Below the pieces are notes generated by a model. That model made no database searches. It had not been told where the DNA came from and saw only the letters and a program-made list of their open reading frames with translations. The translations under genes were made by a program, and so were the position numbers. A DNA stretch of 64,000 bases from Scyliorhinus canicula (taxonomy: Eukaryota): NCBI RefSeq assembly GCF_902713615.1, contig NW_024055445.1, forward strand, positions 124,001 through 188,000, in the 5' to 3' direction. This document shows positions 23,005 through 53,701 of this stretch, piece after piece. The stretch's first letter is position 1. Each line of letters opens with the position of its first letter.

Positions 23005-23095
23005 TGCCGCTCACTGGGACCCGAATCCAACAGTCCGGGAGTTGGTTTGGTCACTGAGTTCCTGACACAACCATTTCCCCCAAATGACCAGAAGG

Positions 23096-23141
23096 ATGAG
23101 GTGGGCCATTTCTCTCAGTTTGTTGCTGACTTTCTTATCCC
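23096..23141 (+). CDS. IGHV: IgM VH leader exon (MRWAISLSLLLTFLS)
   Basis: Hydrophobic signal peptide, phase-1 GT donor at 23142; an in-frame upstream ATG exists at 23084. Confidence 0.9.
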
Positions 23142-23269: not shown

Positions 23270-23574
23270 GTGTCCAGTCGGATGTTGTGTTGACTCAGCC
23301 GGAGGCAGAGACCGGGCGTCCCGGAGGCTCCCTGACACTGACCTGTAAAACCAGCGGCTTCGATCTTAGCAGCTACAATATGTTCTGGATCCGGCAAGTT
23401 CCCGGGCAGGGGCTGGAGTGGTTGGTATATTACTATAGTTCATCCAACAACAACTACGCCGCAGCCATTAAAGATCGATTCACTGCGTCCAAAGACACTT
23501 CAACCAACAGCTTCTCTTTGGCCATGACGAACCTGAAGACCGAAGACACCGCCATCTATTACTGTGCAAGAAAC
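23270..23574 (+). CDS. IGHV: Immunoglobulin heavy-chain V segment (unrearranged, open)
   Basis: TTTTTACAG acceptor; [25 protein letters not shown]...[12 protein letters not shown]...DTAIYYCAR with both Cys and the Trp conserved. Confidence 0.97.
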
Positions 23575-23613
23575 CACAGCGAGAGGAACCAGGGCTGGAC
23601 CCGCACAAGAACA
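23575..23613 (+). promoter_or_regulatory. VH 23-RSS
   Basis: CACAGCG (23575-23581), 23-bp spacer, ACAAGAACA (23605-23613). Confidence 0.92.
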
Positions 23614-23982: not shown

Positions 23983-24060
23983 AGTTTTTGTGCGGGTGTC
24001 TGTCACTGTGACTACAGTGGGTCACAGTGCTGTGCACAGAGACATCCTCATACAAAAACC
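23983..24060 (+). other. IGHD: D1 segment ACTACAGTGGGT (24011-24022) with 5' 12-RSS and 3' 22-RSS
   Basis: AGTTTTTGT, 12 bp, CACTGTG (24004-24010); CACAGTG (24023-24029), 22 bp, ACAAAAACC (24052-24060). Confidence 0.95.
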
Positions 24061-24355: not shown

Positions 24356-24383
24356 AGTATTTGACACGCTGTGTCTCACTGTG
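24356..24383 (+). promoter_or_regulatory. 5' 12-RSS of D2
   Basis: AGTATTTGA (6/9 to consensus), 12 bp, CACTGTG (24377-24383). Confidence 0.85.
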
Positions 24384-24440
24384 ATACCTGGTACATCTTG
24401 GGCTACTGGGGACAAGGCACCATGGTGACGGTGACTGCAG
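24384..24440 (+). CDS. IGHJ: Pre-joined D2-JH segment (TWYILGYWGQGTMVTVTA)
   Basis: The WGQG J motif begins 23 nt after the D2 heptamer with no RSS between; GTAAG donor at 24441. Confidence 0.9.
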
Positions 24441-27400
24441 GTAAGAACCTTTCAATTATTTATGAACTGTTTTACTTCAGTCTTTGTTTTATTTAGTTTT
24501 TTCTATTTTAAGTATGCATCCGTTCACTGAATTGCGGGTTTGCTGGATTCTGTATTGAGATTTTGTTGTAATGTTTCATGTGATTCTGCTGAAAAAGGAA
24601 TTATTCTGCCTCTTGACAAACGGTTCTGCTGAGGGATTCAGTGCCGGGTTGTTATGATTTAGTGTTTATTTGCTGAGGATACTGTGTGGCTGGGTACTTT
24701 AAATACCTAACGCCTGTTAAACAGTTTGGTACTTCTGCAATGTTTAATCTCGGCGACATCTGAGCAGGTTTTACCATCTCCTGCACAAGTGTTAGAAATC
24801 TAACCCAATACTCACAAAATATGCTGAAGTATCTGTGTCAATTTATTGAACACTTCCCGCTTATTGACAATGCTGATGATCTTCTTCCATATTTCTGTGT
24901 TTTAATTGTTCATTCACTTGCTGAAAGGCGGATTTGGTGGGTAGAATTTTCTTGAAATGCTGTTTGATTCTGTTGAAAGTGTTTGTAGAATCGAGCTGGT
25001 TCTCCATGAGACCGATTTCAGCCCCTCGGTGATGTAATTTGCTGTATTTCTGCTGAAGAGTTTGTGGCTGGTTGATTTTGAATGAGTAAAATTTGTGAAA
25101 CGGTTCTGGCGTTTCTATATTCTTTAAACTCGATGATACTCGATGATTTCATTTTTGTAATTGAATGAAAACAAGAAACGTATTTGAAACTGCTTGGTAC
25201 ACGATTGTGGGTGGAAAACAGTCATGATTTTATAGTGTTTTTTAAAAGTGATGATTGCAGATTAAATTAAGCCACAGTTTATAATGCTCTTTCCGAACAT
25301 AATTTGTTACTGCAATGACATCCTGGCTTTTCTGCAATGTTCCATCTTGGTGGGGTTGATGGATGCAGCTTTTATCTCTCCTTCCAACTGTTTAAATGCG
25401 TTTGAAATACGGTCCAACCTGTATAGAATGTGGTAAAGTTTTTAAAATATTTTGGACATACCCCACATCCTGACAACGATATTACTGTTATTCTGTATTT
25501 CTATTTAGTTTGATAATTCATACATTTGACGGCGAACTGGTTCGCTGGATTCGATATTCAGATGTTTTTGAAATGTTACGTTTCACACTGTTGAATGTAG
25601 AATTTAGCTGTTTCTCAATGAAACGAGTTCAGTCCTTACGTTGAGTTTTGGTGTTTTCCTGCTGAGGAGATAGTGTGTCTGGGTGACTTTGAATAAGTAC
25701 AATTTGTGAAGCGGTTTTCTGTTTCTCCGTTGTTTCTGCATTGTTCAAACTGGGTGACATTGAGCAGTTACACGTTTTCTGGTTTAATGTCGAAAGATTT
25801 GCGCGTTTGAATCTCCTTGAAACACAATTGTAGGGAGTAAACGCGGCAGGTTTCGAAAATAAAGAAAGCAATTAAAGATTTGATAGACATATTTAAATTT
25901 TACGTGATGATTACTGATTAAACTAAACCATGGCGTCATTAAGAATGCAATTTGTTACTGCAATCTGAAACTGTTTAATTAAAACGTTTTCAAATTAGTG
26001 AGTAAAATTAATATAACTTAAACAATTATAATGCTGTGTTATAACCACATTATCCAAATATATTTTCATATTAATATCATTAATCATCAATCGCCTTTCA
26101 CAATTCTGCTCTGCTCTGCACTCCATCAGCATGACCAGAAAAGTTTCTAAACTGGAAATATTTTCTGATTATTTATGAAACTGTTTTAATAATAATATAC
26201 TGATTCTACAGCACTGTTCAGTTGCACAATATATATTTGAATTATTTTTTTATTTCTCTGATTACGTTTGCAGTTACTTAAGTAGGAGTTTTATATTGCA
26301 GTTTGGCAATTTATGTATCCGGTTATTATATTACTTATGTGCAGCAGCTCGTATATTATCTCTTCAGCGTCATTTGTAGTTGTCTCTGATATAATCATAA
26401 AGAGTTTTGTCAGAGGTGGAAGTCGCTGACAGTGAAGGAATTGTTCTTATGATTTTATCTAAATTGTAGGAATGTTCATACTGCTCATTGCTGGAGACAC
26501 AGTAAAAGCTTGAAATTCAAAGATATTAATTTAATTACAAAAGGAGAATATTAGCTTTGCAAAAAATAATAACATCCTGTCTCGCAGAGCTGTGCTGTGC
26601 ATAATATAACATTATAGAAATAAAACAAGTTATACAATAGAAGAATAGATTATATCTGAGCCTCAAGCTTATTTCTTATTAAATCATAAATTGAACAAGA
26701 ACATTTCTGCATCATTTTCTGATTATGTTTCAGTGCTGTAGAGGATCTGACTGAGTTGTTTTCATTAAGTGTTGCACTGATTAATTTGGATCTCCTTTCT
26801 TTAAGCAATATTTTCAAGAATAAAGTTAATCGAATTGCCTGAATGATTAAATCTCGAAACACTTTTATTGGTCACAAACTACCAAGGACTTTATTGTTAG
26901 AGATATAGTTTCGAGTTACAATAGTTTATCAATTCGGGAGTACCGCTTTAACAAACTGATGAGATATTGCACATGTCTGAATTATTCCATCCGATAATTT
27001 GAAGTTTAATATTTAATTAAATCCAAACTATTTATCAAATTTCAGACAGGAGCAGGTTTTGAATTACAGAGAACCATGTTTTATTATTTATATTATAGAG
27101 TACAAATCAGCTGACAGGTCAACTAATTGACAATTGGCAATGTGACATTAGTACTAACTAATTCAACATAAATTAACCCTACAATTGAGTAGTACACTGG
27201 CGTGCGATATCAAAGCTATTAGAGAATGTTTAATTGTACTGAAAATAATTTACAAAACAATACATTTATTTACTCAGGTTGAAGAGTCGACCCGCCTCGA
27301 TTGTTTTGTTGATTATATTTAATTAGAAAATTGGATCAAATCAGGTCATCAGTTTCCAATGTGAATGTTTCCTGGTTTGTTTATTTCTTAGCAAACACTG

Positions 27401-27659
27401 GATCTTTGTCACGGACATTAAACTCCCCTCAATCTGTTATATTTAATGTGATCATTCTCCGTGATAATACATTGTGCCCAGTTCAGACAGACAGGAGAAA
27501 TAGCTGAAAGGCGAAGGGAGTTTTGAAATTAATATCAGTTTCATTTCAAAAAGGTTATTGAATTGTTATTGTCGTAAGTTGACCATTTATCAATTAGAAT
27601 CGAGCAGTTTGAATGATTCGTTCCCCTGTGTTTCAGAGTGAAATTTGACAGACTAAATA

Positions 27660-29520
27660 CTCTCTCATGCGCACAGTGTCTCTCCCTCACACACTCCCTC
27701 TCTCCCACAAACCCAGACTATTCCTCAAACACACAGACACTCTCTCACAGACACTCTCACACACACAATAGCTCTTCAAAAACACACAGTCTCTCGCACA
27801 CACACACTCGGGCACACACACGTACTGCCTCACACACTCAGTTTCTTACATACTCACTGTCTCCAACTTTATCTCGCTCCAAATCTCCCTCACACACCAA
27901 CAGACTGTCACTCGCTCTCTCACAGGCACAGGCACATTATTCCTCTCTCTCTTTCACAGGCAATCTCCCTCGCACACTCTCTCACACACTCTCTCTTACA
28001 AGTTTTACCAATCTCACTCACATACACAATCATTCGCAGACACACACTCGCACACATGCACTCTCGCACACGTTATCTCTTGCGCACACACTCGTTCACA
28101 CACATGCTCTGTCACAGACATCTCTCACACATCCGCTCTCTCACACACACACTCTCTTATGCATACGCTCTCTCTCACACTCTCTCTGACATGCATCGTC
28201 TCTCGCTCGCACGTTCTCTCATGCTCTCTCACACACATGCTCTCACACACACACCCTCTCACACACACGCTCTCTCACACACACGGCCTCTCTCACACAC
28301 ATGCTGACTGGTTTAGCTCACCAGGCTAAATCGCTGGCTTTTAAAGCAGACCAAGCAGGCCAGCAGCACGGTTCGATTCTCGGACAGGCGCCGGAATGTG
28401 GCTACTACGGGCTTTTCACAGTAACTTCATTGAAGTCTACTCGTGACAATAAACGATTTTCATTTCATTTCTCTTGTACTCCTGCTCTCTCACACACATA
28501 TATCCTCTCTTTCATACATACTCTCTTATGCACATGCGCTCTGATACTCACTCTCTCCGCACGCAATCGCTCACTCGCTTACACTCATGTTCGCTGATGC
28601 ACATGCTCTCTAGAGCACATGCTTTCACACACACTTGCTCTGTTGCATACATGCTCTCTCACACACATGTACTCTCCCACACCTGCTTTCTCACACACAC
28701 GCTCTCTCACACACATATCACTCGTACTCACGCTATCTTGCACACACGCTCCCCCACACACATGCCCTCTCACTCACACGCTCTCTCGTACACTCACTCT
28801 CACACACTCATGCTCTCACCAACACACGCTCTCTCACACACACGCTCTCTCATTCTCTCTTGCACACTCACTCACACTCAAGCTCTCTCATTCTCGCTTG
28901 CACACACGCTCTCTCACACACATGCTCTCTCGCACACATGCTCTCACACACGTTCTCTTGTACACATGGTGTCTCGTGCTCTCACAAACATGCTCTCTCA
29001 CACACATGCTCTCTCACACATGCTCTCTCATACTCATGCTCTCTTGCACGTGTGCTCTCTTGCACACATGTTCTCTTTCACACATACTGTCTCGTGCTCA
29101 CGTTCTCTCACACGTACACTCTCTCACCCACATGCTCTCACAAACATGATGTCTGGCACACATGCTCTCTCACACATATGCTGTCTCACTCGCATGCTTT
29201 GGTGCATACATGCTCTCTCACACACAGTTTTGCGCATACAGTCTCTCTCCTGTGGACACTATTTTGCTCCCTCACACACACACATCCTCTCGCTCGCACA
29301 AATACACACAATGACGCTCTCACACACAGATATTCTTTGACACACAGAGATACTCTCTCTCACACACACACCCACATGCATACTCTCTCTCCCACTCTCT
29401 TCATCCATCTCTCGCACGAATGCAGACACATACATATGCACAGACACACGCTCTCAGACACATACCCACACTCTCCCTCTCACACACACGCACACGCAGA
29501 CACACACACATTGTCAGAAA
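27660..29520. repeat. Degenerate (CA)n/(CT)n low-complexity tract with a SINE at ~28307-28470
   Basis: Runs such as CACACATGCTCTCTCACACAC; the source of spurious His/Thr/Ser ORFs. Confidence 0.9.
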
Positions 29521-29559
29521 CACAGATGAGAGCGACTGAATCTAACATCAATAATAAAC

Positions 29560-29870
29560 ATAATAATCTTTACTATTGTCACAAGTGGGCTCACATTAAC
29601 ACTTCAATGAAGGTCCTGTGAAAATCCCCTACACGCCACACTCTGGCGCCTGTTCGGATACACAGAGGAATAATTCAGAATATCCAAACCACCTAACAGG
29701 ACGTTTTTCAGGACTTGAGGGAGGAATCCGGAACACCTGGAGGAAACCCACGTAGACACGGGGAGAACCTGCAGACTCCACACAGGCAATGACCCAAGTG
29801 GGAATGGAATCCGGATCCCTGGTGCTGTGAAGCGACAGTGCTAACCACTGTGCTACAGTGCCGCCAAATC
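29560..29870 (-). mobile_element. tRNA-derived SINE
   Basis: Reverse-strand head GACAGTGCTAACCACTGTGCTACAGTGCCGCC and V-SINE body. Confidence 0.75.
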
Positions 29871-30316
29871 ACGGCATCATTTAAACGTGTGACCTTAAGG
29901 AGCCCAACCAAAGAATGAATGGATGGGAATCAGGAGAACAATCTCTGCTGGTTGGAGTCATACCTAGCACCAAGGTAGATGGATTCCATTGCTGGAGGCT
30001 AATCATCTCAATTCCAGGACATCACTGCGAGACTTCTTCAGGGCAGTGTCCTCGGACAAACCATCTTCAGCTTATTCATCAATGACCTTTTCATCATAAT
30101 GTCTGAACTGGGATTGTTCTCAGATGATTGCACCAAGTTCAGCACAATTTTCAACTGTGCAGTCACTGAATAAATCTATGTGTAAATAAAGCAACATGGA
30201 GACTACATCAGGTTCTGGCTGACAAGTGGTAAGTAACAGTCAAGTCACCCAATTGAAGGCAATGCCCATCTCCAGTAAGAACGGATCTAACCACCGCCCC
30301 TTGACATTCAATGGCA

Positions 30317-31265
30317 TGTTGCACGTTTTACTATGGGCGTAAAACGCGTTTATTGGAGTGTATTAACACGCCTCCGAGTTCGACGTGTGCTTAACACTGC
30401 TAGGCTCTGTTCTATGTAATTATTTAGCTCTGGAGTCGCCAGTTGCCGTATAGGCAACGTCACAAGTATTCCAAGGTCAAGTTCAAAGTAATAAAGACGA
30501 TACACCGATTAGTAAAGTTCAAACGATCAATATTTATTATACAGTTATAATAAATACTCATGCACACACTAAGAGACTAAGCTATAACTAAACTTAAGCA
30601 AACAGAATACTTATCTAACAGGAACAGGCAAGGTCAGAGAACGAGGCCTTCGTCCTGGTCTGGCACTGCAGCCTTCAGCAAGCGTTCTGGTACTTGGGAG
30701 TCTAGTGGGCTTGGATCGCGTAGCGAGCGTTGAACTTACGGTTTCGGCGGCTGGTGCTCAACGGCTGGGGTCAGGATGCAAGATGTCAGTCAGAGCCGGA
30801 GCACGGGTTTAACAGACCGGACAACACGAGGTCCCTATCTTTTATAGGGGTTCCATTGTCCTTCCCTCTTCTCGGGCGGGCTCTACCTATTGGATCAATT
30901 TCTTATCGATACTGGATTAATTCCCCAATGCGAGGGGGTCTCCGTGATGGAGGGGGCGTTTCTTATGTCCTTTTGTTTGGAGGTTTCTGGTGCCTCGATG
31001 TCTGGGTCTTGATTAGAATGTGTCCATTCAGAACCAAATGTATCTATTGTGTGGGTGTTCAAGTCTGATGGCCTCATTAGCATGCAAAGTGTTTTGCCAT
31101 TTGCACCTAGCTAAGGTCTTTTCACCTGAGCCCAAACTGGTTTCTGCTGCTGCAGAATGCAAACTGCTCTTTGCAGACTGCTGTTCTGGCTAAACTGTCT
31201 GTTTCCCAGCAGTCTTCTATTTTAGTTTGGCTCAGTGTCCATTTTGCGTGGCCAGCATGGCTACA
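30317..31265 (-). repeat. 3' LTR
   Basis: Identical by eye to 39180-40128 except 30769 G vs 39632 A and 30982 G vs 39845 A; minus-strand CCAAT and TATAAAA boxes. Confidence 0.97.
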
Positions 31266-31280
31266 TTCCCTCCTTGTGAT
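31266..31280 (-). promoter_or_regulatory. Polypurine tract
   Basis: Minus strand ...CAAGGAGGGAA directly precedes the TG of the 3' LTR. Confidence 0.75.
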
Positions 31281-31594
31281 CCTCACAATCATACTATTGT
31301 GAAGGATCACCTATGTACTTTGCCTTCCTTGTGTTCTGACCTCTTGCCAGTTCCTGTTCTACTCTGTTCTAAACTATGGGAAGAAGAGAAAAAAATTTTT
31401 AACTAACATTTCTACTTGGCCCTATGTCAAAAGGACATGCATTACTACAACTGGGAACCTCTACCTATCACTATTAACCTTAACCTTAACTTAAACATTT
31501 AATCACTCTAAACCTTAACCATTCACACCACAACATCACACTTCCCAACTCGGCAGTCGAGTATGGAACAATATAATACATGGCTGAATTTTAT

Positions 31595-31948
31595 TTACAG
31601 AGTGTTGTAATCAGTGAGGGGTTGAGGGGTTTGGTGGAATCCGAAGATGGGGGATTGCACTCTATAGATGGGTGAGGTGCTGGAACGAGAGGCTCTCCTC
31701 TTCCATTTCCTCAACCTGAGGGTCTGCACTAGGACGATGAGGATCGCGATCACCAACAGTGATTCGATTATGTAGGACATGGAGTACCACGTCATGAATT
31801 TAGTACACCAGGTCTGAACCTCGCTGATCAGAGCTGAGCACTGGGGGTTTGTTGTACTAACATTTACGGTGGGGGTTGTGGGGGAAACGTGTCTTGTTTC
31901 CACACATATACATATGACATTAAACAGTAATAAGTGGGCTTCCATCAT
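31595..31948 (-). CDS. 117-aa predicted single-pass membrane protein in the env position
   Basis: Tandem ATGs in good Kozak context; hydrophobic N-terminus MMEAHLLLFNVICICV, NVS sequon, C-x10-C, TM YIIESLLVIAILIVLVQTL, polybasic RLRKWKRR. The frame is open further upstream to TTG 32041. Confidence 0.6.
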   Translation of the reverse strand: MMEAHLLLFNVICICVETRHVSPTTPTVNVSTTNPQCSALISEVQTWCTKFMTWYSMSYIIESLLVIAILIVLVQTLRLRKWKRRASRSSTSPIYRVQSPIFGFHQTPQPLTDYNTL

Positions 31949-32884
31949 TTTGCTGTTCTTCTTCTTTCTCTTCCTTCTTCCTCCGGTATTGACAATCCTG
32001 GCTTCGACCTCTGTCTCGTCCTTTGAAACCTTTGGGATCAAGCACAGTATCTGTCAATACACAGTTTAAGACCTTTACTTGTTAGTGCATCTGTCTTTCA
32101 AATCCCAATTGACCCTTTAAAATGACTGGCTAAGTCACACCCTGTGACTCCCCTCATTTTTTTTTTCAAAAAGCGAATTTAAAGACCAGCATACACCTAA
32201 CAATCCTTCCTTCTGCGAGCCGTCTCGCAGGCTTTGCTGATTTACCATCCGAATGTTCCCGGATGTAAATAGCATGTGGGATGGTGGCCGAAGGGCTACC
32301 TAACGTAAAATGAAAACAAACTTGGAAACAAACATCCGAATGAGTTGCGTATGGGCCGCGACGGGTATGAGTTGGATGGGATCCCCGGGTAGGGCGTGCT
32401 GTGCCATACCCGAGCTTGGCTGACCAAGGGTTGGTTCTCAGACAGGGCGGGTCCTCAGTGCCGTTTGTCCACTGCCTGAGTAACCTGGAAAAAACGGGTA
32501 CGAATGTGTTTACCATGACTTGCAGCCTCTATTTCGCCGAATAGAGGGGCACCTAAAAAACCAAGGGAGCCAAGATGCTCCAACTGAGGACATCACTGAA
32601 GTTCTCAGAGATATCTGCGGACAAGCTATTTGGCGTGTGGCCTTACAACTTTGGAAAAGATCTCCAATCAAACCGAAGTTCTCAAAAGTTTCGGCAGACA
32701 AGCTAACGTGTATGTGAGGTGGTCACAATCTTTTCAGCTGAAAAGAAGATGTCCATCCTCCAGCTGAACAATTTACATTCCTGAAAACAAACAAACATGA
32801 AACGAAGACAAACATACGTGCAGGTTCCATCAGAAAGGACATCGTTTCCCTCAAACGATTCCTATCTTACATCATCTGGACACC

Positions 32885-35800
32885 TCACTTTGATTCTGCC
32901 TCTGTGAACAGGGTCACAAAGGGGTTGCCGTGTCGGGAGTCAGACACCGTGTCGTCCTGCTCTCCCGGATCCCACACCCTTGTGTGGATCAGGCATGCTA
33001 TTTTGGAATTGTGTGACCGGGGGTCACTCTCGTCATTGCGGACAAGTCTGTAGGAATTGTCCCTGTGCCATTGTGTAGCGTCGAGTGTGTTGTCGGGGTA
33101 GTCGGGGTCGGGTGGTGGTTCTGGATATTTGAGGTAGGTGACTTCCATGGGGTCACTGGAGTCGGAGTCGTAGTTGGTGCAGTGTGGGCTGTATGGCTGT
33201 GTGGTGTCGCTGTCTTCAGAGTCAGTGTCAGTCCTGCTGTCTCTGCTGTGGCAGCTTGTGGGCGTGTCGGGGCGTGGTCTGTAGTGGTCTGTGGGCGGAG
33301 TCGTGGGCGAGTCCGTTGATGAACTGGTCTGTGAGGGGGATGGTGGAAAAGTGTCTCTGGTGGGCGGGGTGAAGTGTTCTGCTGCATCCAGCAGGACATG
33401 GTGAGCATGGTTGGCCTGTGTTCCATATGCCTTTAACTGGTTTATATGGAACCACGCGGTCTTCCCATTAGGATACTTTATCCTGTAAACGGAGGGGCTA
33501 ATTTTGTCCGAAATTGAGTAGGGACCGGAATATTTTGGAGCCAAAAAACTGCTGGGGTTATAAACAGATAACATTACCTGTTGCCCAACCTGGAATTCTG
33601 TGGTGTGTACGGTCTTATTGAAACAGGCAGTACGTTGCTGTCGGCGTTTCCCTAGCTGGACTGCGGCTGCGAGCTGTGCAGACCTCACAGTCTCAACTAG
33701 ATCTTTAACTGCCTTTTCATGTGTGAGGGCCGTCAATTCGGGGCTTGTCATGTCCAGTCCTAAAAGGAATTCTGTACCTTTCATAGGGCGTCCGGTCATG
33801 AGTGTGTGTGGTGTGTATCCTGTCGATGTGGAGACAGTGTTCCTTATGAACATAAGTGCAAATGGGAGCACTGAATCCCATGTGGAATTATTCTCTTGGA
33901 CCATTTTCCTGAGGGTAGTTTTTAGGGTCCGATTCATGCGCTCCACAATCCCGCTGGACTGTGGATGATACGCAATGTGGAAGTTCTGTTTGATTCCGAA
34001 TATTGTCAGGACGTTCCTCATGACCCGTCCTGTAAAGTGAGATCCCTGGTCCGAATCGATACTTCGGGGTAAACCCCATCTCGTGAAGATGTGGTGGGTC
34101 AGGATCTTTGCAGCTGTCTTTGCTGTATTTGTTCGTGAGGGAAATGCCTCTACCCACTTGGTAAAGGTATCTATCACCACCAGAACGTATTTATAGCCAT
34201 TCCTACAAGGGGGCAATGGACCTATAAAGTCGATCTGGAGGTTTGTCCAAGGGCCGTTAACTGGGCGAGTATGCCGAAGTTGTGCTTTCTTAGAATACCT
34301 CTCCGGGTTATTCTGAGCACAAATCAGGCAATTCTCTATGTAGTGCGTTACATCATTCCTGAGATTAGGCCACCAACAGAGTTGCCTGAGGTGCCTCGTT
34401 GTTGCATCAATTCCCTGATGCCCGTGTCCGTCATGGAACAAGGCAATCATCTGATTCCTGTCCTGCTGTGGGACCACATAAAGTTGGTCCTTAATGATCA
34501 CACCCTCATGTGTGGTCAGTGCGTGTTTAAAGTGCTCGTAAGCAGGCACAAAGTTTCCCTTGAAAACCTCCCTGAGGTCTCCGTCCTGTTTCTGTGCTGC
34601 CACGAGATCTTTAATATCAGTCTGTGAGACTTGGACTGCGCTCACAGGGGCGCTAGCTGGTGCGCTAGCAGGGGGGGTCCATAAGTGTCCTCTCCTGGAA
34701 CCTGCCTTAGCCAACGCGTCGGCCTTTACATTCCCAGGGGGTGATGACCTATGGTGGCTTCTTACTTTTATTATGCCGAAGGTCCTGTCCTTCGCTTTCT
34801 CTAGGATATGCTGGAGTAAGGGGGCTGATGGAAGGGGTTTTCCGTCTGCGGAGACAAAACCTCGTGTCCTCCACAGGGGCAGAAAATCTGTTAGGCTATT
34901 GCATACATATAAGCTGTCTGAATATATGTCTGCTGGGCTGGGGAAAGAATCGGGGTGGTCCACTATGTACGCTATGGCTGCTAGCTCTGCTGCCTGCGCG
35001 CCTAAGTGACCTGGTAACTTAAGAGCTATCTCTTCGAGAGCGCGCCCCTGCGCGTCCTCTACATAGATGCCGCATCCTGTGATACGCTCACCATTTAAAA
35101 CTGTGGAGGAACCGTCTACATAAATCCTCAAGGGTCCACACGTGTCTGTGGGCTGGGGGCTTTGTTTCGGGTTCCCTATCTTCCTGGGGGGTGTTTTTGC
35201 TAAAAAGGGTCCTGTGTTATGCAGGGGAGCTACAATTTCACAGTCATGGGGTTGTCCGGGGTATTGGAGGTTGTCTGCTAAGTATGTGTGGGTGCGTGTC
35301 CGTTTTACAGTAATGTCCCGTCCTTGTAAAAGTAGGGTCCACCTAGCTGCCCTAATCTGGCTAACTGAACCGCCCTTCAGTCGACCGTCTAGTAGTAGCT
35401 GTGTGGGTGTGTGTTCGGTTAGAATGGTGATGGGGTTTAGTCCGGTGATGTATGAGAAATACTGCACTGCCCAGAAGACAGCAAGGAGGTGCCTCTCACA
35501 GGCTGAAAATCCTTGTTCTACCGGGTCTAACAGTCGGGAGGCATAAGCCACTGGTCTTAGCTGCTCGTGCCGTTCTTGAAGCAACACGGCCGAGAGGGTT
35601 AGATCTGTGCTAGCTACCTCGATTGCGTACGGTGAAAGTTGGTCGGGGACTAGCAGCGCGGGTGCTGCACTAAGGGCTCGTTTCAACTCTTCCACAGCGC
35701 CTGTATGCTGCGGAAGCCATTCCCAGGGGGCTCCTTTCTTAAGGAGGTCTGAAAGTGGGGCGGCTTTTGTCGCGAATCCGTCGATGTGGTTCCGACAATA

Positions 35801-37111
35801 GCCAACCAGTCCTAAAAACGACCGGAGGGCTGAAACATTCTGGGGAAGGGGCAATTTGACAATCGAATCAATTCTTTTGAATTCGATCTCGCGTTTGCCG
35901 TGCGTGATGACTGATCCCAAATACATCACTTTACTTTCCAATATTTGGGCCTTTTTCGGGTTAACTTTACAGCCAATTTCAGTTAAGAGTTCCAGGAGTT
36001 CGGCCAGAAGCGAAATGTGCTCTGCCTTTGTGTCTGTCTGCAGTAGTAGGTCGTCTACATACTGTACCAGACATTCGGGTCGGGAAAATTTTTCTAATCC
36101 ACTTGCCAGCTGTCGGTGGAAAATGGAGGGTGAATTGTGGAATCCTTGTGGGAGGCATGTCCACGTGTACTGCTGTGTTTTAAAAGTGAATGCGAATTTG
36201 TATTGGCACGCTTTTGCCAATGGTATTGACCAGAATCCATTACTGATGTCCAATACCGTGAAGTACTTGGCGTTGAGACCCTGCTTGAGCATGGTCTCGG
36301 GACTAGTAGCTACCGTTGGGGCTACTGCGGGGGTTACTTTATTGAGTTCCCGATAATCAATGGTCAGACGCCATGATCCATCGTGCTTCCTCACTGGCCA
36401 AATAGGGGCATTGTTGGTGGAGGCTACCGTTCTCAGTACACCTTGGTCCAACAAGCTACCTATAACTTTTTCTATTTCCACCTCTGCCTCGAGGGGAAAT
36501 CTATATTGCTTTTGCGGTCGGGGGTCCTGTCCGGTAACATGAACTTGTCCAGTCATTCTGCCACAGTCATGACGGTGACTTGCAAATGCTGTCCTGTGTT
36601 TGTTTAGTAGGGCCTTAATTTGTCTGTCGGTGTGGAGTGTAGTCAGGTCGAATGAGTACTCTCCCACTGCGCTAATCCGATTAGCGTAGTCTCCTACTGT
36701 GAGGGTGGCTGGGGCTCTGTCTGATCTCGCCATTCGCCAGACACACTGGTTCACTGGGTCGAACGACAAGCTGTGAGCGTTCATAAAATCTATCCCCAGG
36801 ATGTGCTCTGCTGTCCGGGGAAGATTTACTAGAACTACGGGGTGCCTTGTGCTAATGTTCCCTAGCTGGATCGCTACGGGTGCTGTGATATGTCCCTGCT
36901 GCGAGTGTCCGGTGAACCCGCTAAGTGTGATGGTGGAGGTGGTCGGCCACGTGTCTGAGTGTGCCGTGGTTGTGGAGTTAATGGTGGTGCGGGATCCTCC
37001 TGTGTCCCACAGTAACTCTATGGGCTTCCCTTTGACTTTTGCCGTGACTACGGGCCTCCCTGATGAGTCCCATAGTGTGTCACAGACCCAAGTGGGGGAG
37101 CCCGAACACCG
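32885..37111 (-). CDS. pol: Pol: protease, RT, tether RNase H, second RNase H, integrase with GPY/F motif, acidic Pro/Ser/Thr tail
   Basis: In frame after the gag stop with no further stops (109 codons translated by hand plus the 1299-aa ORF). Motifs: LLWDTGGS; LDISNGFW, LPQGFHNSP, YVDD; IYVDGSS, AQAAELAA, IYSDS, GNVKADALAK; HDGHGH...CLIC, QIDF, DSDQG, IVERMN, GPY. Confidence 0.95.
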   Translation of the reverse strand, partial: RCSGSPTWVCDTLWDSSGRPVVTAKVKGKPIELLWDTGGSRTTINSTTTAHSDTWPTTSTITLSGFTGHSQQGHITAPVAIQLGNISTRHPVVLVNLPRTAEHILGIDFMNAHSLSFDPVNQCVWRMARSDRAPATLTVGDYANRISAVGEYSFDLTTLHTDRQIKALLNKHRTAFASHRHDCGRMTGQVHVTGQDPRPQKQYRFPLEAEVEIEKVIGSLLDQGVLRTVASTNNAPIWPVRKHDGSWRLTIDYRELNKVTPAVAPTVATSPETMLKQGLNAKYFTVLDISNGFWSIPLAKACQYKFAFTFKTQQYTWTCLPQGFHNSPSIFHRQLASGLEKFSRPECLVQYVDDLLLQTDTKAEHISLLAELLELLTEIGCKVNPKKAQILESKVMYLGSVITHGKREIEFKRIDSIVKLPLPQNVSALRSFLGLVGYCRNHIDGFATKAAPLSDLLKKGAPWEWLPQHTGAVEELKRALSAAPALLVPDQLSPYAIEVASTDLTLSAVLLQERHEQLRPVAYASRLLDPVEQGFSACERHLLAVFWAVQYFSYITGLNPITILTEHTPTQLLLDGRLKGGSVSQIRAARWTLLLQGRDITVKRTRTHTYLADNLQYPGQPHDCEIVAPLHNTGPFLAKTPPRKIGNPKQSPQPTDTCGPLRIYVDGSSTVLNGERITGCGIYVEDAQGRALEEIALKLPGHLGAQAAELAAIAYIVDHPDSFPSPADIYSDSLYVCNSLTDFLPLWRTRGFVSADGKPLPSAPLLQHILEKAKDRTFGIIKVRSHHRSSPPGNVKADALAKAGSRRGHLWTPPASAPASAPVSAVQVSQTDIKDLVAAQKQDGDLREVFKGNFVPAYEHFKHALTTHEGVIIKDQLYVVPQQDRNQMIALFHDGHGHQGIDATTRHLRQLCWWPNLRNDVTHYIENCLICAQNNPERYSKKAQLRHTRPVNGPWTNLQIDFIGPLPPCRNGYKYVLVVIDTFTKWVEAFPSRTNTAKTAAKILTHHIFTRWGLPRSIDSDQGSHFTGRVMRNVLTIFGIKQNFHIAYHPQSSGIVERMNRTLKTTLRKMVQENNSTWDSVLPFALMFIRNTVSTSTGYTPHTLMTGRPMKGTEFLLGLDMTSPELTALTHEKAVKDLVETVRSAQLAAAVQLGKRRQQRTACFNKTVHTTEFQVGQQVMLSVYNPSSFLAPKYSGPYSISDKISPSVYRIKYPNGKTAWFHINQLKAYGTQANHAHHVLLDAAEHFTPPTRDTFPPSPSQTSSSTDSPTTPPTDHYRPRPDTPTSCHSRDSRTDTDSEDSDTTQPYSPHCTNYDSDSSDPMEVTYLKYPEPPPDPDYPDNTLDATQWHRDNSYRLVRNDESDPRSHNSKIACLIHTRVWDPGEQDDTVSDSRHGNPFVTLFTEAESK

Positions 37112-38860
37112 TCAGTTCGTCTCGTCCACATTGGTGGGTCCTGACTGTACTGCTACATTGTGGATGGGTTTTGCTTTGTTGCGGTTCAGAGTGCCTGTCT
37201 GCTGGCCTCTCTGAGATCGCTGGGGTGCTTGGCACTCTTTAGCCCAATGCCCTAACTGTCCACAGTTATAGCATTCCTGTCCTTTCTGTTGTGGGCTGCT
37301 CTTGCCGTCATTTACCCATGCGGGCTTCTGGTGCTCTCTGACTGCTTGGATATCTGCAGCAGCCTGAGCCTCTTCTGGGGATCTAACCTTTCCTTTTGCC
37401 TGAAGCGATTGCTCCCAAGCGCGGGACAATCTTTTCAGGACCCATTTCTCGTTATGGGCCTCTTCTGAGGGGTCGTAACTGTTGCAAGCGCTCTGTCCTG
37501 CTTCTGTTGCGTGTGAGATAATTGTGCGCGTCCACTTAACCATGTTTTCGCGGGTTAAATGCGCTCTATCTAGCTGTCCGAAAACTGCGCTGAAATGAAT
37601 CCACAGCCTTCCTGCGAATGCTGTGGGGTGTTCGGATCTCTTCTGCCTGCACTTATTCAATCCTTCTACGGGGTCACCTCTATTGTACCCGATGGCATCT
37701 AAAATGGCGGTGTGCATCTCCTCTAGGCTGCCTCCTGCCACGTTTTGTGGGTCGGGGAGGGCTGCTACTACGCTCTGGTCTAAGCTCAGCACGGTGAGCT
37801 TAACCTGCTCTCTCTCATCCAGGCCGTACATGGTAGCCTGCTGTTTTACTTTAGCGAAGAACTGGTGGGGGTCTGCGGTGGGGAGGAACGGAGTGATCTT
37901 TTCACAAGCGTCCCTTAGCTGGGTTACTGTTAAAGGGGTGGTGTAAGTTATGTCTGGGGCGCCTTCTGATTCGGCTTTCCTCTGTGTGGTTACGGGATTC
38001 ATGGGTGCGGTTATGATCTGAGCTGTGGGGGGTTGGGGTGCCTGTCGTTTCTGCTGAGCTGCGGGCGCACATGTTCCCTGAACATAACGCTGCGCTGTCT
38101 CGCTTAATTCCTGCCAATCTGGGGCATTTTCCCCATCTAACTGAGCTCCAAAGGTGCTTTGGAAGCCATTCTGCACCGAAAGCAGAGATTGCAGTTCCGC
38201 AATCTGTTTCCTGCATTTCGCGTGGTCAACTGTGCTTTGTCTTTGTTCGGTTGTTGCAGCATGGAGTGCTCTCAAAGCTGCTTTGAGATCGGAACATTGC
38301 CTCTGCAATGCCTCCACCTGCTTTTCCGATTCCTGTCTTATCAGAACGGCACGTTGCACGTCCTGATAGGCTTTCTCATACTGGGTCTGGGAACTGCTCA
38401 GATGAGCTAGACAAGACTGGTGAGCCCTCTTGGCATCATCCACCTCTCTATCCTTCTCTGCCAACTTCCCTTTTAATTCCAGGTTTTCTTTCTCGACGTC
38501 CCTGACATCGACCTTACTCATTCGGTTCCTTTCCTCTAAATCTGCCCGGAGCGTCCTGATGACCTCCTCTGCGCCTCGCAACTGTGCCAAGCAGGACACA
38601 ATTGCCATCGGCTTGCGTGCTTTACCTAAACTCTTTTTGTGTATTTGAGAGAGGTTCTCCCACCAAGTATGACCTATACTCCCGGGACCTGTCTCCTCAT
38701 TTGCACAAAACTCTTTCCAAAGGGGCCATCCCTTTCCTTGTAAATATTTGCGGAGTTCCAGCTCCCACGTGGGACACTGGCCTACCCTGCTACTGCTGCT
38801 GGTCGCTGCGACCACAAACTTTGCTGGATCCATCAGACGTTCCATTGCCTGCATGGCCAT
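37112..38860 (-). CDS. gag: Gag (582 aa) with long predicted coiled coil and one CCHC knuckle
   Basis: GAAATGG start context; CYNCGQLGHWAKEC (37231-37272); position between PBS and pol. Confidence 0.9.
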   Translation of the reverse strand: MAMQAMERLMDPAKFVVAATSSSSRVGQCPTWELELRKYLQGKGWPLWKEFCANEETGPGSIGHTWWENLSQIHKKSLGKARKPMAIVSCLAQLRGAEEVIRTLRADLEERNRMSKVDVRDVEKENLELKGKLAEKDREVDDAKRAHQSCLAHLSSSQTQYEKAYQDVQRAVLIRQESEKQVEALQRQCSDLKAALRALHAATTEQRQSTVDHAKCRKQIAELQSLLSVQNGFQSTFGAQLDGENAPDWQELSETAQRYVQGTCAPAAQQKRQAPQPPTAQIITAPMNPVTTQRKAESEGAPDITYTTPLTVTQLRDACEKITPFLPTADPHQFFAKVKQQATMYGLDEREQVKLTVLSLDQSVVAALPDPQNVAGGSLEEMHTAILDAIGYNRGDPVEGLNKCRQKRSEHPTAFAGRLWIHFSAVFGQLDRAHLTRENMVKWTRTIISHATEAGQSACNSYDPSEEAHNEKWVLKRLSRAWEQSLQAKGKVRSPEEAQAAADIQAVREHQKPAWVNDGKSSPQQKGQECYNCGQLGHWAKECQAPQRSQRGQQTGTLNRNKAKPIHNVAVQSGPTNVDETN

Positions 38861-39155
38861 TTCCTCTGACTCTCTTTTTATAATTTGGAACAGGGGGTTG
38901 TTGGGGTGGTGTTTCGTAAAAAGGGTACGGCTTACGCTATTTTCCGATCACAAAACTACCGAAAGTTTGTCGCAACAAAAAGCTTTCAGTTTTACCTTAC
39001 AGCCCTGTTAGTACGCATGCACTAAACACACTTCCGAATTTCGCTTATTATTTTGAACACCTTGAATACTTGTGATCTCTTTCTTTCTCTGCAATTTGGA
39101 GTTCTAATTCAAATTTCAGGGTCCTGGACACTGTGGTGTTTCCACTTACAACAGG

Positions 39156-39174
39156 GTCCCGGCGGATGTCGCCA
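39156..39174 (-). promoter_or_regulatory. Primer-binding site, tRNA-Arg(UCU)-like with one bulged base
   Basis: TGGCGACATCCGCCGGGAC starts 5 nt inside the 5' LTR. The vertebrate tRNA-Arg(UCU) 3' end as I recall it (GUCCCGGCGGAGUCGCCA) predicts TGGCGAC-TCCGCCGGGAC. Confidence 0.7.
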
Positions 39175-39179
39175 CTAAA

Positions 39180-40128
39180 TGTTGCACGTTTTACTATGGG
39201 CGTAAAACGCGTTTATTGGAGTGTATTAACACGCCTCCGAGTTCGACGTGTGCTTAACACTGCTAGGCTCTGTTCTATGTAATTATTTAGCTCTGGAGTC
39301 GCCAGTTGCCGTATAGGCAACGTCACAAGTATTCCAAGGTCAAGTTCAAAGTAATAAAGACGATACACCGATTAGTAAAGTTCAAACGATCAATATTTAT
39401 TATACAGTTATAATAAATACTCATGCACACACTAAGAGACTAAGCTATAACTAAACTTAAGCAAACAGAATACTTATCTAACAGGAACAGGCAAGGTCAG
39501 AGAACGAGGCCTTCGTCCTGGTCTGGCACTGCAGCCTTCAGCAAGCGTTCTGGTACTTGGGAGTCTAGTGGGCTTGGATCGCGTAGCGAGCGTTGAACTT
39601 ACGGTTTCGGCGGCTGGTGCTCAACGGCTGGAGTCAGGATGCAAGATGTCAGTCAGAGCCGGAGCACGGGTTTAACAGACCGGACAACACGAGGTCCCTA
39701 TCTTTTATAGGGGTTCCATTGTCCTTCCCTCTTCTCGGGCGGGCTCTACCTATTGGATCAATTTCTTATCGATACTGGATTAATTCCCCAATGCGAGGGG
39801 GTCTCCGTGATGGAGGGGGCGTTTCTTATGTCCTTTTGTTTGGAAGTTTCTGGTGCCTCGATGTCTGGGTCTTGATTAGAATGTGTCCATTCAGAACCAA
39901 ATGTATCTATTGTGTGGGTGTTCAAGTCTGATGGCCTCATTAGCATGCAAAGTGTTTTGCCATTTGCACCTAGCTAAGGTCTTTTCACCTGAGCCCAAAC
40001 TGGTTTCTGCTGCTGCAGAATGCAAACTGCTCTTTGCAGACTGCTGTTCTGGCTAAACTGTCTGTTTCCCAGCAGTCTTCTATTTTAGTTTGGCTCAGTG
40101 TCCATTTTGCGTGGCCAGCATGGCTACA
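39180..40128 (-). repeat. 5' LTR
   Basis: 949 bp, TG...CA termini, partner of 30317-31265. Confidence 0.97.
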
Positions 40129-41064
40129 GGCATTACCATCATTGAATCCCCACTCGAAACCTCCTGGGGGTTCACATGGACTAGAAAGTGATCTGGACGA
40201 GTCATATAAAATTTGAGGCCAGAAGAACAGGTCAAAGGTGAAAAACTCATCTCCTGACACCCCAAAGCCTGCCCACCATCTAAAGATCCGCTGTGGAAGA
40301 TCATCATGTCTCCTGAGGCAGCACCTTCCAAACCCATGACAGCGGCCATCTGGACAAGGACAGCAGACACATGGGAACACCGCCAACTGGAAGCTCAACT
40401 CCAAGTCACTCAGCATCATGACTATAAAATATATCCCCGCTCCTTCACTGCCGCTGGTTCAAAACCATGGAACTGACTCGGGGAAACCCCACATGGACTG
40501 CACTGGTTAAAGAAGGAAGCTCACCACCTTCTCAAAGGCAATGAGGGATGGAAAATAAATGCTGACCCAGCCACAGACGCCTACATCACAATAATGAATA
40601 AACACAACACACTCTCCGTATACAATATGACAAGAATTTAACGGGCAGAAAAATCCCATTTGCAAAAGTAAAATCAGCAAATTTACAGGAATGTTTATTG
40701 TCCCAGTTCTAAATTGTTTTGTGGAAAATTAAATTACATCGACATTAAAGCAGCTGCCCAGTGATCTACACTGCTGTCTGACTTTACACAGCCGGTGTTA
40801 CTGACAGTATTAAAGCAGCTGCCCAGTGATCTACACTGCTGTCTGACTGCACACAGCCGGTGTTACTGAAAGCTGATCAATGTGGAGAATCAGGACAGGA
40901 TCGATGGAGAGGAAGAGGAAGAGGTGGGGGTGGTGGAGCCGAATGGAGGAGCCCCCAGCTCGGCTGTGGACAACAGACATCGGAAAGCTGAGCCTGAGCG
41001 GAAACTCATCCAGAGAAACATCGTCCTAATGGGCTGGGAGAACCTGGGAATGATCACTCACCTA

Positions 41065-43760
41065 CGGTCACTCACTCACTCACTCACTCTCACCTGTCTT
41101 CACTCATTCACTTACCTTCACTCACTCACCATCACTCATTGACACTCACTCACCCACCTTCCCTGACGCACTCTCACACACCCACCCTGACACACTCTCT
41201 CACCCACCCTCTCTGACACACTCTCACTCACCCACCCTCCCTGACACACGCTCACCCACCCTCCCTGACACACTCTCACCCACCCACCCTCCCAGACACA
41301 CTCTCACCACCCCCCATCCTCCCTGACACACTCTCCCTCACCCACCCTCCCTGACACACTCTCACTCACCCACCCTCCCTGACAGACAGTTACTCACCCA
41401 CCTTCCCTGGCACACTCTCACTCACCCGCCCTCCCTGACACACACTCACCGCCCACCCTCCCTGACAGACAGTTACTCACCCACCCTCCCTGACACACTC
41501 TCACACACCCACTCTCCCTGACACACTCTCACACCCAACCTCCCTGACACACTCTCACTCACCCACCTCCCTGACACACTCTCACACCCCCCCCCCCCAC
41601 CCCGTGACACACTCTCACACACCCACCCCCTCCTTGACACACACACTCTCACCCACACTCCCTGACACACACACTCTCACCCACCCTCCCTGACACACAC
41701 TCACTCACCCACCCTCCCTGGCACATTCTCACTCACCACCCTCCCTGACACACTCTCACTCGCCCACTCTCCCTGACACACACTCTCTCACCCACCCTCC
41801 CTGACACACTCTCACTCACCCACCCTCCCTGACACACTCTCACTCACCCAGCCTCCCTGACACACTCTCACTCACCCACCCTCCCTGACACACACACACT
41901 CACGCAAACTCCCTGACACACTCTCACTGACCCACCCTCCCTAACACACTCACCTAGCCTCCCTGACACACTCTCACTCACCCACCCTCACTGACACATT
42001 CTCACTCACACACCCTCTCTGACACACACACACTGACCCACCCTCCCTGACACACACTCACTGACCCTCCCTCCCTGACACACACACGCTCACTCACCCA
42101 CCCTCCCTGACACACTCTCACTCACCCACTCTCCCTGACAGACCCTCACTCACCCACCCTCCCTGACACACTCTCACTCACCCACCCTCCCTGACACACT
42201 CTCACTCACACACCCTCCCTGACAGACCCTCACTCACCCACCCTCCCTGACACACTCTCACTCACACACCCTCCCTGACACACTCATTCACGCACTCTCC
42301 CTGACAGACCCTCACTCACCCACCCTCCCTGACAGACCCTCACTCACCCACCCTCCCTGACACGCTCTCACTCACCCACCCTGACACACACACACTCACC
42401 CACCCTCCCTGACACACTCTCACTCACCTACCCTGACACACTTTCACTCCCTCACCCTCACACACAGTCACCCATCCTCATTCACCACCACTCGCCCTGA
42501 TTGACTCCCCCTTTCAGACCCAACCTAACTCGTTCATCCTCACTCACACACTCTCAGCCACTCATCCTCAAACCAACGCACATTTTGACTCATCCTCACC
42601 CACTCTCCTTCAGGCTCTCCCCCTCACTCAGTCACCCCCCCACACTCACCCCCCATCCTCGCACACCCACCCTCACACACCCTCACTCACCCACCCTCAC
42701 GCATGCTTATTCACTCACCCACACTCACACACCCACCCTCACGCACCCTCAATCAGTAACCCACCCTCACTGACACATTCACTCTCCCCCTCACTCAAAT
42801 ACCACCACCCACCCTAACTCACTCACTCACTCACCCTCCAACCCACCATCGCTCTCGAATGTTCCCTTACACATCCACCCTAACTCATTCATACTTACTC
42901 ATCCAGCCTCACTCATTCACCCTCACAAAGACTCGCACCAACCCTCTTTAAGACCTTCACTCTCAGATCCTTACCCTTCCTCACTCACACACACTCACTC
43001 ATTCACATTCCCTCATATACCCTTAATGAGCCACCCTCACCAGACGCACCTACCCTCTGTCACCCACTATCACTCACCCTCACTCACCCACCCATCCTCA
43101 CACACCCTCATTTACCCACACCCATCCCCTCACTCACCCTGACTCACTCAACCACCATCACACACCCACCCTCGCCCACCACCCACACTCATTCTCTGCC
43201 ACTCACACATCCTCACTCACCTTCACACACCCACTAATTCTCAATGACGCACCTCACTCACTGACCCGCACTCACTCATACATCCTCCTTCAATCATCCT
43301 CACTCATTCACCCTCACTCGACCACGGTCACTGACTCCCCCTCATTCATTCACCCCCTACATTCACTCACCAGCAGTCGACCCCCGACTCACCCAAGCTC
43401 ACTCACTCACCGACCCCCTGACTCACCCACCCTCGCTCACTCATCTTCATTGACTCTCACTACACAACCTCACTCACCCAGCGGCACTCATTCCCTGCGT
43501 CTCACTCACTCTCCCTCACCTACCCTGGCTCATTCGTGCTCGGTGACACAGCCTCGCCCATTTACCCTCACTCAGTCATTCACCCTGATCTACCACTCAT
43601 CAACACTAATACATCCTCAATCAGCCAACTCACTCACACACACTCACTCTCCTACCCTCACTCAGTTACTCACTCACCCACACTCACTCTCCTACCCTCA
43701 CTCAGTTACTCACTCACCCACACTCACTCTCCTACCCTCACTCAGTTACTCACTCATCCT
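41065..43760. repeat. C-rich minisatellite (~28-bp CCCACCCTCCCTGACACACTCTCACTCA, 41150-42420) grading into degenerate CACT/CACC repeats
   Basis: Dozens of recognisable units; three 44-bp copies at about 43630-43755. Confidence 0.9.
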
Positions 43761-43877
43761 CTCTCACTGATGCTCAGGAAATCGGCAAGGGAGCGTCTGC
43801 AGCGAGTGAGGAATAGAGAACTGGAGCGAAACTGATGTCCATTGGCCCCCGAATGTGGCTCAGAACACGGAGGTGGC

Positions 43878-44780
43878 GAGAGCCGGGGGAAGGAGCGGAG
43901 AGCCGGGGGAAGGAGCCGAGAGCCGGGGGAAGGAGCCGAGAGCCGGGGAAAGTGCGGAGAGCCGGGGGAAGGAACCGAGAGCCGGGGGAAAGTGCGGAGA
44001 GCCGGGTGAAAGTGCAGAGAGCCGGGGGAAGGAGCAGAGAGCCGGCGGAAAGTGCGGAGAGCCGGGGGAAAGTGCGGAGAGCCGGGAGAAGGAGCAGAGA
44101 GCCGAGGGAAGGAGCAGAGAGTCGGGAGAAGGAGCAGAGAGTCGGGGAAAGATAGAGAGCCGGAGGAAGGCTGCAGAGAGCCGGGGGAAGGAGCAGAGAG
44201 CCGGAGGAAGGAGCAGAGAGCCGGGGGAAGGAGCAGAGCGCCGGGGGAAGGCCCAGAGAGCCGGAGGAAAGTGCGGAGAGCCGGGGGAAGGAGCAGAGAG
44301 CCGGGGGAAGGAGCAGAGCGCCGGGGGAAGGAGCCGAGAGCCGGAGGAAAGTGCGGAGAGCCGGGGGAAGGCGCAGAGAGCCGGGGAAAGTGCAGAGAGC
44401 CTGGAGAAGGGGCAGAGAGCCGGGGGAAGGGGCAGAGAGCTGGCGCAAGTGCGGAGAGCCGGACGAAAGTTCATAGAGTGGGCGATAAGCCATAAGAATC
44501 GGGGTAAAGCGCACAGTGCTGGCGAAATGTTCAAAAAGACCGGGGAAAGTGCCAGGAACCGGGAAAAGTCGAAAGAACTGGGGAAAGTGCAGCACACATG
44601 GGCAAAGCACAAAGAGCAGGAAGAAAATTCAGTGCCGAAAGTGCAGAGATGCGGAGGAAAGCGCAGAGAGCCGTGGAAAAGAGCAGAGAGCTAAACGATA
44701 GTGAAGGGACCAGGAGGAAGGTGCAGCAATCCAGCGGGAACCGCAGAGAGATGGGGGAACGCTCAGAGAGCGCGGGGCGG
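43878..44780. repeat. G-rich 20-bp minisatellite (GAGAGCCGGGGGAAGGAGCA / GAGAGCCGGGGGAAAGTGCG)
   Basis: About 30 well-conserved units to ~44460, then decaying. Confidence 0.92.
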
Positions 44781-45147
44781 GGGTTGGGTGGATCGCAGAC
44801 AGCCCGGTCTCAGTGACAGGCGGAATATGGAGTTAACACCACAATCAGCACAGGGCAGGCTCTTACTGAATGGGGGAGGAGACTCCACGGATTGAATGGC
44901 CTCCTCCTGCTGTCAATGTGCATGGTCCTAAAATTAGTGAATGTTGCAATTACTCAAATGTAGAGTTTTATTGTAATTATATAAAGGTACATTCAGAAGG
45001 TGTTTTTGAAGCAAAGCCACAATTCTCTGGTTTGGGGAGTGGGGTTAGTGAGATGGAGGGAGGAGGGGGCATCAGTCAGTTTGAACAAAGGGAATTTCCC
45101 AAAACTGCAAAGATACAAATGAAGACACAACTTTTGTAAGACAAATT

Positions 45148-45786
45148 GATTGTGACGTACACAGCTCAGTTAGCTGGATTGTGACGTACACAGCTCAATT
45201 AGCTGGATTATGACCTACTCGGCTCAGTTAGCTGGATTGTGACGTACACAGCTCAGTTAGCTGGATTGTGACATACCCAGCTCAGTGAGCTGTATTGTGA
45301 CGTAGACATCACAGTCAGCTGGTTTGTGACGTACGCAGCTCAGTTCGCTGGATTGTGACGTACACAGATCAGTTAGCTGGATTGTGACGTACACAGCTCA
45401 GTTAGCTGGATTGTGACGTACGCAGCTCAGTTAGCTGGATTGTGACGTACACAGCTCAGTTAGCTGGATTGTGACGTACACAGCTCAGTTAGCTGGATTG
45501 TGACGTACACAGCTCAGTTAGCTGGATTGTGACGTACGCAGCTCAGTTAGCTGGATTGTGACGTATACAGCTCAGTTAGGTGGATTGTGACGTACACAGC
45601 TCAGTTAGCTCGATTGTGACGTACACAGCTCAGTTAGCTGGATTGTGACGTACACAGCTCAGTTAGGTGGATTGTGACGTACACAGCTCAGTTAGCTCGA
45701 TTGTGACGTACACAGCTCAGTTAGCTCGATTGTGACGTACACAGCTCAGTTAGCTGGATTGTGACGTACACAGCTCAGTTAGCTGG
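45148..45786. repeat. 29-bp tandem array CAGCTCAGTTAGCTGGATTGTGACGTACA, about 22 copies
   Basis: Period checked at 45380/45409; two AGCT per consensus unit. Confidence 0.95.
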
Positions 45787-45960
45787 ACGGCTGGTTCGTG
45801 ACGAAGAGCGATCCCAACAGCGCGGGTTCAATCGCTGCACCGGCTGAGGTTATTCATAAAGATCTCCATTCTCAACCTTGCCCCTGGCCTGATGTGTGGT
45901 GACCCTCAGGTTAAATCACCACAGTCAGCTCTCAAAGGGAAAGAACAGTCTCCGGGACTA
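45770..45960 (+). mobile_element. Third SINE family copy, continuous with the last array unit
   Basis: CAGCTCAGTTAGCTGGACGGCTGGTTCGTG...CCTCAGGTTAAATCACC matches 61815-62030. Confidence 0.75.
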
Positions 45961-53540: not shown

Positions 53541-53701
53541 TTACAGAGATCGATTTCCGAGTGTCATGAACTCAACAGTAGAAATGCAATGACAAATATA
53601 TTAAAGAATGAATTAGCAGCGGGAGAAAATGAAACGAGAATATTAAAAAACATATCCTGGATTAATAAACAAACTAATTATATTTGGCTCGATCCCCGTA
53701 G

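Follow-up and report, generated by a model that had tools for sequence, protein, structure and literature searches.

A catshark IgM heavy-chain cluster in which D2 and JH are already joined in the assembled genome

The window analysed here, by which we mean the whole 64-kb stretch of DNA, holds one IgM heavy-chain cluster, which is complete and lies on the forward strand. A 23-nt pattern for the J core was found once in the 64 kb (chance expectation 0.00), and the consensus signal CACAGTG-spacer-ACAAAAACC likewise has a single match in the window where 0 would be expected by chance. The leader exon (23084..23141, +) has ATGs at 23084 and 23096, reads MRWAISLSLLLTFLS from the second of these, resembles the leader of Heterodontus HV01 (P0005) and ends at a GTGAGT donor at 23142. 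It is followed by an open VH exon (23270..23574, +) with the C-terminal sequence ...YYCARN, which is recognised as a Pfam V-set domain (E = 2.4e-19) and finds its best matches in Scyliorhinus torazame and other sharks, with 79-84% identity to the S. torazame VH proteins; VH proteins of Mustelus were matched as well. The VH recombination signal (23575..23613, +) could be read directly as CACAGCG, a 23-nt spacer and ACAAGAACA. The D1 coding segment, ACTACAGTGGGT (24011..24022, +), sits between a 5' signal made up of AGTTTTTGT, a 12-nt spacer and CACTGTG (23983..24010, +) and a 3' signal made up of CACAGTG, a 22-nt spacer and ACAAAAACC (24023..24060, +). The gaps from V to D1 (436 nt) and from D1 to D2 (361 nt) are close to the spacing of roughly 400 bp described for nurse shark clusters (PMC2435157). 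Up to this point the order is that of a shark minicluster, with leader and VH followed by a 23-spacer signal and then, a few hundred base pairs after V, a D1 flanked by 12- and 22/23-spacer signals.

A minicluster has a separate D2 with two flanking signals and a J segment that stands apart with a signal of its own; here, only the 5' signal of D2 is present. This retained signal (24356..24383, +) consists of the nonamer AGTATTTGA (24356-24364), which is weak, matching the consensus at 6/9 positions, a 12-nt spacer (24365-24376) and the heptamer CACTGTG (24377-24383). A fused D2J coding run of 57 bases (24384..24440, +; ATACCTGGTACATCTTGGGCTACTGGGGACAAGG...ACTGCAG) abuts the heptamer directly and is followed by the splice donor GTAAGA. 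In the J frame the run is open and translates as TWYILGYWGQGTMVTVTA; of the two remaining frames, one is interrupted by stops and the second is out of frame with J. D2 and J are therefore already fused in the assembled genome, and the end of the antigen-binding loop is thereby fixed. A preliminary description of this DNA had stated that the D2 3' signal, the DNA separating D2 from J and the J signal are all missing, that the joint is open in the J frame, and that signals remain at V (23), D1 (12/22) and D2J (12). Direct reading of the bases bears out each of these statements, and a heptamer-like site looked for in 24384-24700 was found nowhere in that interval. The same description held that V-D1-D2J joining or direct V-D2J joining is still possible, and this too stands, given that the remaining signals comply with the 12/23 rule.

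Two other readings of the fused segment were considered and set aside. That it might be a J with a 12-spacer signal of its own and no D2 part is ruled out because unjoined D2s of paralogous clusters share ATACCTGG directly after the same signal. A D-mu-like protein made from the segment is unsupported, with no in-frame ATG upstream and an open frame that begins at a GTG at 24371. Neither of the two ORFs crossing the D2-J joint is on record as an exact match.

Downstream of J the remainder of a minicluster is present, with four Cmu exons, a secretory tail and transmembrane coding sequence. The J-Cmu1 intron (24441..46292, +; approximately 21.9 kb) runs from the GTAAGA donor to an acceptor reading ...cccccag, and the last G of J together with TG from the Cmu1 exon (46293..46592, +; Pfam C1-set, E = 7e-14) completes a V codon. 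Cmu2, Cmu3 and Cmu4 with the secretory tail follow at approximately 46800..50189 (+) and are all open (C1-set E = 3.6e-20, 1.1e-7 and 1.8e-15, respectively), the C-terminal part of Cmu4 being a typical mu secretory tail. A frame scan located a probable mu TM1 exon (...NIWTTASTFITLFFLSISYSAAVTLVKV) at approximately 53690..53835 (+). V, Cmu1-4, the secretory tail and TM1 are thus open throughout, and the exons and splice sites are intact.

The J-Cmu1 intron is around 22 kb long partly because of an LTR retroelement of about 9.8 kb that has inserted into it (30316-40133), antisense to the IgM gene. The element is bounded by a pair of LTRs of roughly 955 bp which are near-identical, with a perfect block of 453 bp, and its long minus-strand open frames, of 582 and 1299 aa, are gag-like and pol-like, respectively; the insertion appears to be very recent. 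Elsewhere in the intron, 27600-29700 and 40800-44700 are occupied by long, strongly strand-skewed tracts of low complexity, in which GC skew falls to -0.64. The long apparent ORFs in these tracts consist of S/H/T/L or R/G/E/S repeats, and the tracts are probably microsatellite- or minisatellite-like. Outside the cluster, two adjacent long ORFs on the forward strand upstream (2266-4777; 401 and 430 aa) resemble a transposase-derived or domesticated protein, and downstream (60495-61349) there is a tandem C2H2 zinc-finger ORF of 284 aa in which HTGERPF linkers recur.

To place the boundaries within the fused segment we drew on paralogous clusters. Logan contigs from four runs were aligned to 22900-25300 at 85% likeness, a threshold that takes in many paralogous clusters; three of the runs were DNA, each from a different organism, and the fourth was guessed to be RNA. 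Three of them matter in what follows: X5 (DNA, organism A), X10 (DNA, organism B) and X15 (the RNA run). Paralogue contigs from X5 match the window up to 24391, which assigns 24384..24391 (+; ATACCTGG) to D2. At least two of these contigs then continue with GGAA, a heptamer-like site beginning CAC... and, within 30 nt, an A-rich nonamer-like tract. They represent unjoined D2s whose 3' signal has a short spacer; as the agreement with the consensus is only 0.65, the exact spacer length is unreliable. On the other side, at least two X10 contigs align from 24399 onwards and are preceded by ...CACTGTG ACGCCA, so that the unjoined paralogue J starts ACGCCA-TGGGCTACTGGGG. Paralogue contigs give the germline J as ACGCCA followed by TGGGCTACTGG, and a J that starts with ACGCCA is consistent with transcript contigs that end ...TACGCCA before 24399 and with the joined genes of Mustelus (SMGYWGQG) and S. 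torazame (TLGHWGQG).

The J-derived part of the fused run (24399..24440, +; TGGGCTAC TGGGGACAAGG...ACTGCAG) must therefore begin near 24398/24399 and not at TACTGGGG. The preliminary description had placed about 20 nt between the D2 heptamer and a J starting at TACTGGGG; that boundary lies some 5 bases too far 3', J reaching at least to TGGGC, but its view that the 5' end of J is trimmed was right, as about 6 nt are missing relative to the paralogue J. Alignment with unjoined paralogues, which it had recommended as a means of sorting the D2, N/P and J nucleotides, resolves the segment into about 8 nt (ATACCTGG) that are clearly D2, about 7 bases (TACATCT; 24392..24398, +) that correspond to neither of the paralogue ends (GGAA at the 3' end of D2, ACGCCA at the 5' end of J), and J from 24398/24399. 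The TACATCT bases may have been added as N or P nucleotides, or may belong to D2 or J ends peculiar to this cluster. Measured against the paralogues, on which the partition rests, D2 is about 4 nt shorter, J about 6 nt shorter, and 7 bases lie between them. Since the paralogues possess an unjoined D2 (ATACCTGG, GGAA, CAC...) and an unjoined J (CACTGTG, ACGCCA, TGGGCTAC), the window lacks exactly what a D2-J coding joint removes. With the segments fused and both recombination signals precisely lost, as judged against the unjoined paralogue ends, the segment has one of the features of germline-joined genes.

Transcript contigs allow the use of the joint to be considered. X15 was obtained from another sample, in another study, than the best-matching DNA run; its depth is high over the leader, V and J but falls to low values between them. 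In at least five X15 contigs the match to the window ends at 24440 and is followed by sequence that agrees with the start of the window's Cmu1 at 28/30 positions, as expected of spliced J-Cmu1; on their sequence they appear to come from paralogues. One X15 contig, with a depth of 47, joins V up to 23568 to 14 added bases (GGATGGCGAAACCA) and then to the window from 24391 on. It is in frame and reads CAGWRNQYILGYWGQG, with 30 bases (14 + 16) between GCA and TGG and a CDR3 ending YILGYWGQG. Among the contigs listed, paralogous J contigs align only from 24398-24404, and the alignment of this contig from 24391 therefore indicates that it carries the cluster-specific junction letters. This suggests, from the 28 nt on the J side of the contig, that the same D2-J joint is present, and in use, in a second animal. 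Alternatively, a sister cluster could be the source of the contig, or a J with a germline 5' end that reads ACATCTTGGGC. The germline status of the joint rests on the assembly consensus together with this same RNA contig.

One X5 contig (depth ~7) matches 24064-24362 with zero differences, placing the D1-D2 spacer of the window cluster in that animal and ending just before the signal. The X5 contigs with an unjoined D2, of which there are at least two, are most simply taken as paralogues, judging by their sequence, and could in principle represent an allele of the window cluster. At several leader and V-exon positions (23042, 23050, 23301, 23504 and 23510), all contigs listed, from three organisms, carry a letter other than that of the window. 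The V of the window cluster differs from those of the abundant paralogues, and its own variant, which is not visible in the contigs, may have been lost where assemblers drop rare variants. When RNA runs were searched with the 72-nt D2J stretch, for which 3 words were sampled, every matching run had 1/3, and these included runs of other organisms; the single matching word is probably a conserved J word. A Logan hit (L001), taken up as a possible source of paralogue or orthologue DNA, was set aside: its V carries a 23-spacer signal, neither D nor J lies within 1.6 kb, and it is not a shark minicluster.

The X5 and X10 DNA runs also contain contigs of fully joined VDJ paralogues, which belong to loci other than that of the window and whose joints run from 23565/23568 to 24398-24404. 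Their depth is at or above that of single-copy contigs of the same run, and two of the junction sequences are shared, identically or almost so, by organisms A and B. Organism A has a further joined form, with the CDR3 ASTAVGLDGNTLGYW, which is found in both DNA (X5) and RNA (X15) and matches S. torazame P0051 (ASTAVGLDGNTLGHW).

Taken together, we think it likely that this is an intact, rearrangeable catshark IgM minicluster in which a RAG-type deletional coding joint between D2 and JH arose in the germ line, with a junction of about 7 bases, leaving one or two joins to be made. The anatomy supports this, being what a D2-to-J coding joint leaves: the inner signals and the DNA between them are gone, the 5' signal of D2 is kept and the frame is open. 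In the proposed course of events, a RAG-type joint between the short-spacer 3' signal of D2 and the long-spacer signal of J would have formed in the germ line, deleting both of these signals along with the few hundred bases between D2 and J. Both coding ends would have been trimmed, with about 7 bases (TACATCT) at the junction, and the product would be a single D2J segment retaining the 12-spacer 5' signal of D2 and the splice donor of J. B-cell precursors would then need two joins (V to D1 and D1 to D2J), or one (V to D2J), instead of three, and the CDR3 of every product would have the same C-terminal half, ...(W)YILGYWGQG. The work of Lee et al. 2000 (PMC2193156) provides the analogy from which we infer that the joint is due to RAG acting in germ cells, and the effect of the joint on the repertoire is likewise a deduction.

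Of the alternatives, the one that survives best accepts that the germline joint is real and proposes that the cluster itself is inert, a decaying relic that is neither rearranged nor expressed in B cells and so has no effect on the repertoire. The weak D2J nonamer (6/9) would fit such a relic, as would a J-Cmu1 intron of about 22 kb, with its young LTR element, compared with the 6.3-6.8 kb found in nurse shark (PMC2435157), and the fact that the window's own V-exon letters at several sites occur in no X5 contig listed. Against it, all exons and splice sites are intact, the heptamers are canonical or nearly so, and the RNA run has one in-frame V-N-D2J contig, at a depth of 47. We regard inertness as possible but unlikely.

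A second alternative would replace the recombinase with a deletion of some 350-400 bp, produced by replication slippage or by the repair of random breaks, which happened by chance to extend from the coding end of D2 to that of J. Such an event would have to place both breakpoints at most about 12 nt from the borders of the two heptamers without leaving any remnant of a signal, a placement that we estimate a random deletion would achieve in about 1 in 1000 cases and that a RAG coding joint yields by design. The roughly 7 bases at the joint that match neither paralogue end, as would be seen after N or P addition, also argue against it, and we consider it highly improbable. Hardly more credible, and if anything a little less so, is the proposal that the joint is somatic (a V-D-DJ intermediate from a lymphocyte) or a misassembled haplotig in the reference, the true germline cluster being an ordinary V-D1-D2-J: such intermediates are known from shark thymocytes and, less often, from B cells (PMC2435157), and X5 has contigs with an unjoined D2 sharing ATACCTGG, but a single lymphocyte clone should make up a negligible share of the reads and so would not enter a consensus assembly, a misassembly would not delete exactly from signal to signal, and the same junction letters are found joined to V in an RNA contig from another sample.

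If the reading of an intact cluster with a RAG-type D2-J joint made in the germ line is correct, the locus is of some interest in a wider context. The chief evidence from nature for the V(D)J recombinase having acted in germ cells and reshaped antigen-receptor loci comes from the germline-joined antibody genes of sharks, and a cluster frozen after a single D2-J step extends this picture of germ-cell recombinase activity. It also offers a simple natural test of what one fixed junction does to the length, diversity and timing of use of CDR3. The general picture is unchanged, and specialists would expect such forms to exist. Going further, one might propose that V-D1-D2J clusters form a small, conserved and selected catshark subfamily, descended from one old germline D2-J join, that supplies an innate-like or early-life IgM repertoire; this is a speculation that we hold to be rather doubtful. 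Were it true, the subfamily would hard-wire the C-terminal half of CDR3-H in a manner comparable to IgNAR type III or IgM1gj.

Pre-joined antibody genes have been known in sharks since 1988. The preliminary description was correct in treating germline-joined IgH genes as established in cartilaginous fish, for which VD-J, VD-DJ and VDJ forms are described (PMC5192425; PMC2193156). All single-join configurations, V-D-DJ among them, arise somatically in the lymphocytes of nurse shark (PMC2435157). As a germline layout, V-D-DJ was not found in the searchable literature, which does not cover the original description of the horned shark genes, and appears there only as a somatic intermediate (PMC2435157). 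The germline form has thus rarely if ever been described explicitly, and an earlier description is possible.

The VD-J and VD-DJ clusters of horned shark and skates are like the window cluster in being V-D1-D2-J-Cmu miniclusters with inherited fusions that lack signals, and the VD-DJ form contains a D2-J join as the window cluster does (PMC5192425, PMC2193156). They differ from it in that only D2 and J are joined in the window cluster, V and D1 being free (V-D-DJ). The fully joined VDJ IgM genes, including IgM1gj of nurse shark and those of catshark and Mustelus, use the same J family and likely share with the window cluster an origin in germ-cell recombinase activity. Joined VDJ paralogues are present in the DNA runs of two species, and one of them (CDR3 ASTAVGLDGNTLG-Y/H-W) matches S. 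torazame P0051. These genes undergo no rearrangement and provide one fixed binding site, whereas the window cluster would still undergo one or two somatic joins with only the C-terminal half of CDR3 fixed. The DJ intermediates formed somatically at tetrapod and shark IgH loci are an identical product, a DJ that has a 12-spacer signal on its 5' side and is still to be joined upstream (PMC2435157), but each lymphocyte forms its own and they are not passed on to offspring, whereas the joint described here is in the genome assembly. The closest functional analogue is IgNAR type III of nurse shark, in which D1 and D2 are fused in the germ line, the outer segments rearrange, fewer joins are made and CDR3 diversity is restricted (PMC4622739). 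IgNAR has three D segments and its fusion is between two Ds, whereas the window cluster is IgM and its fusion is between D and J; for type III, expression in neonates is documented.
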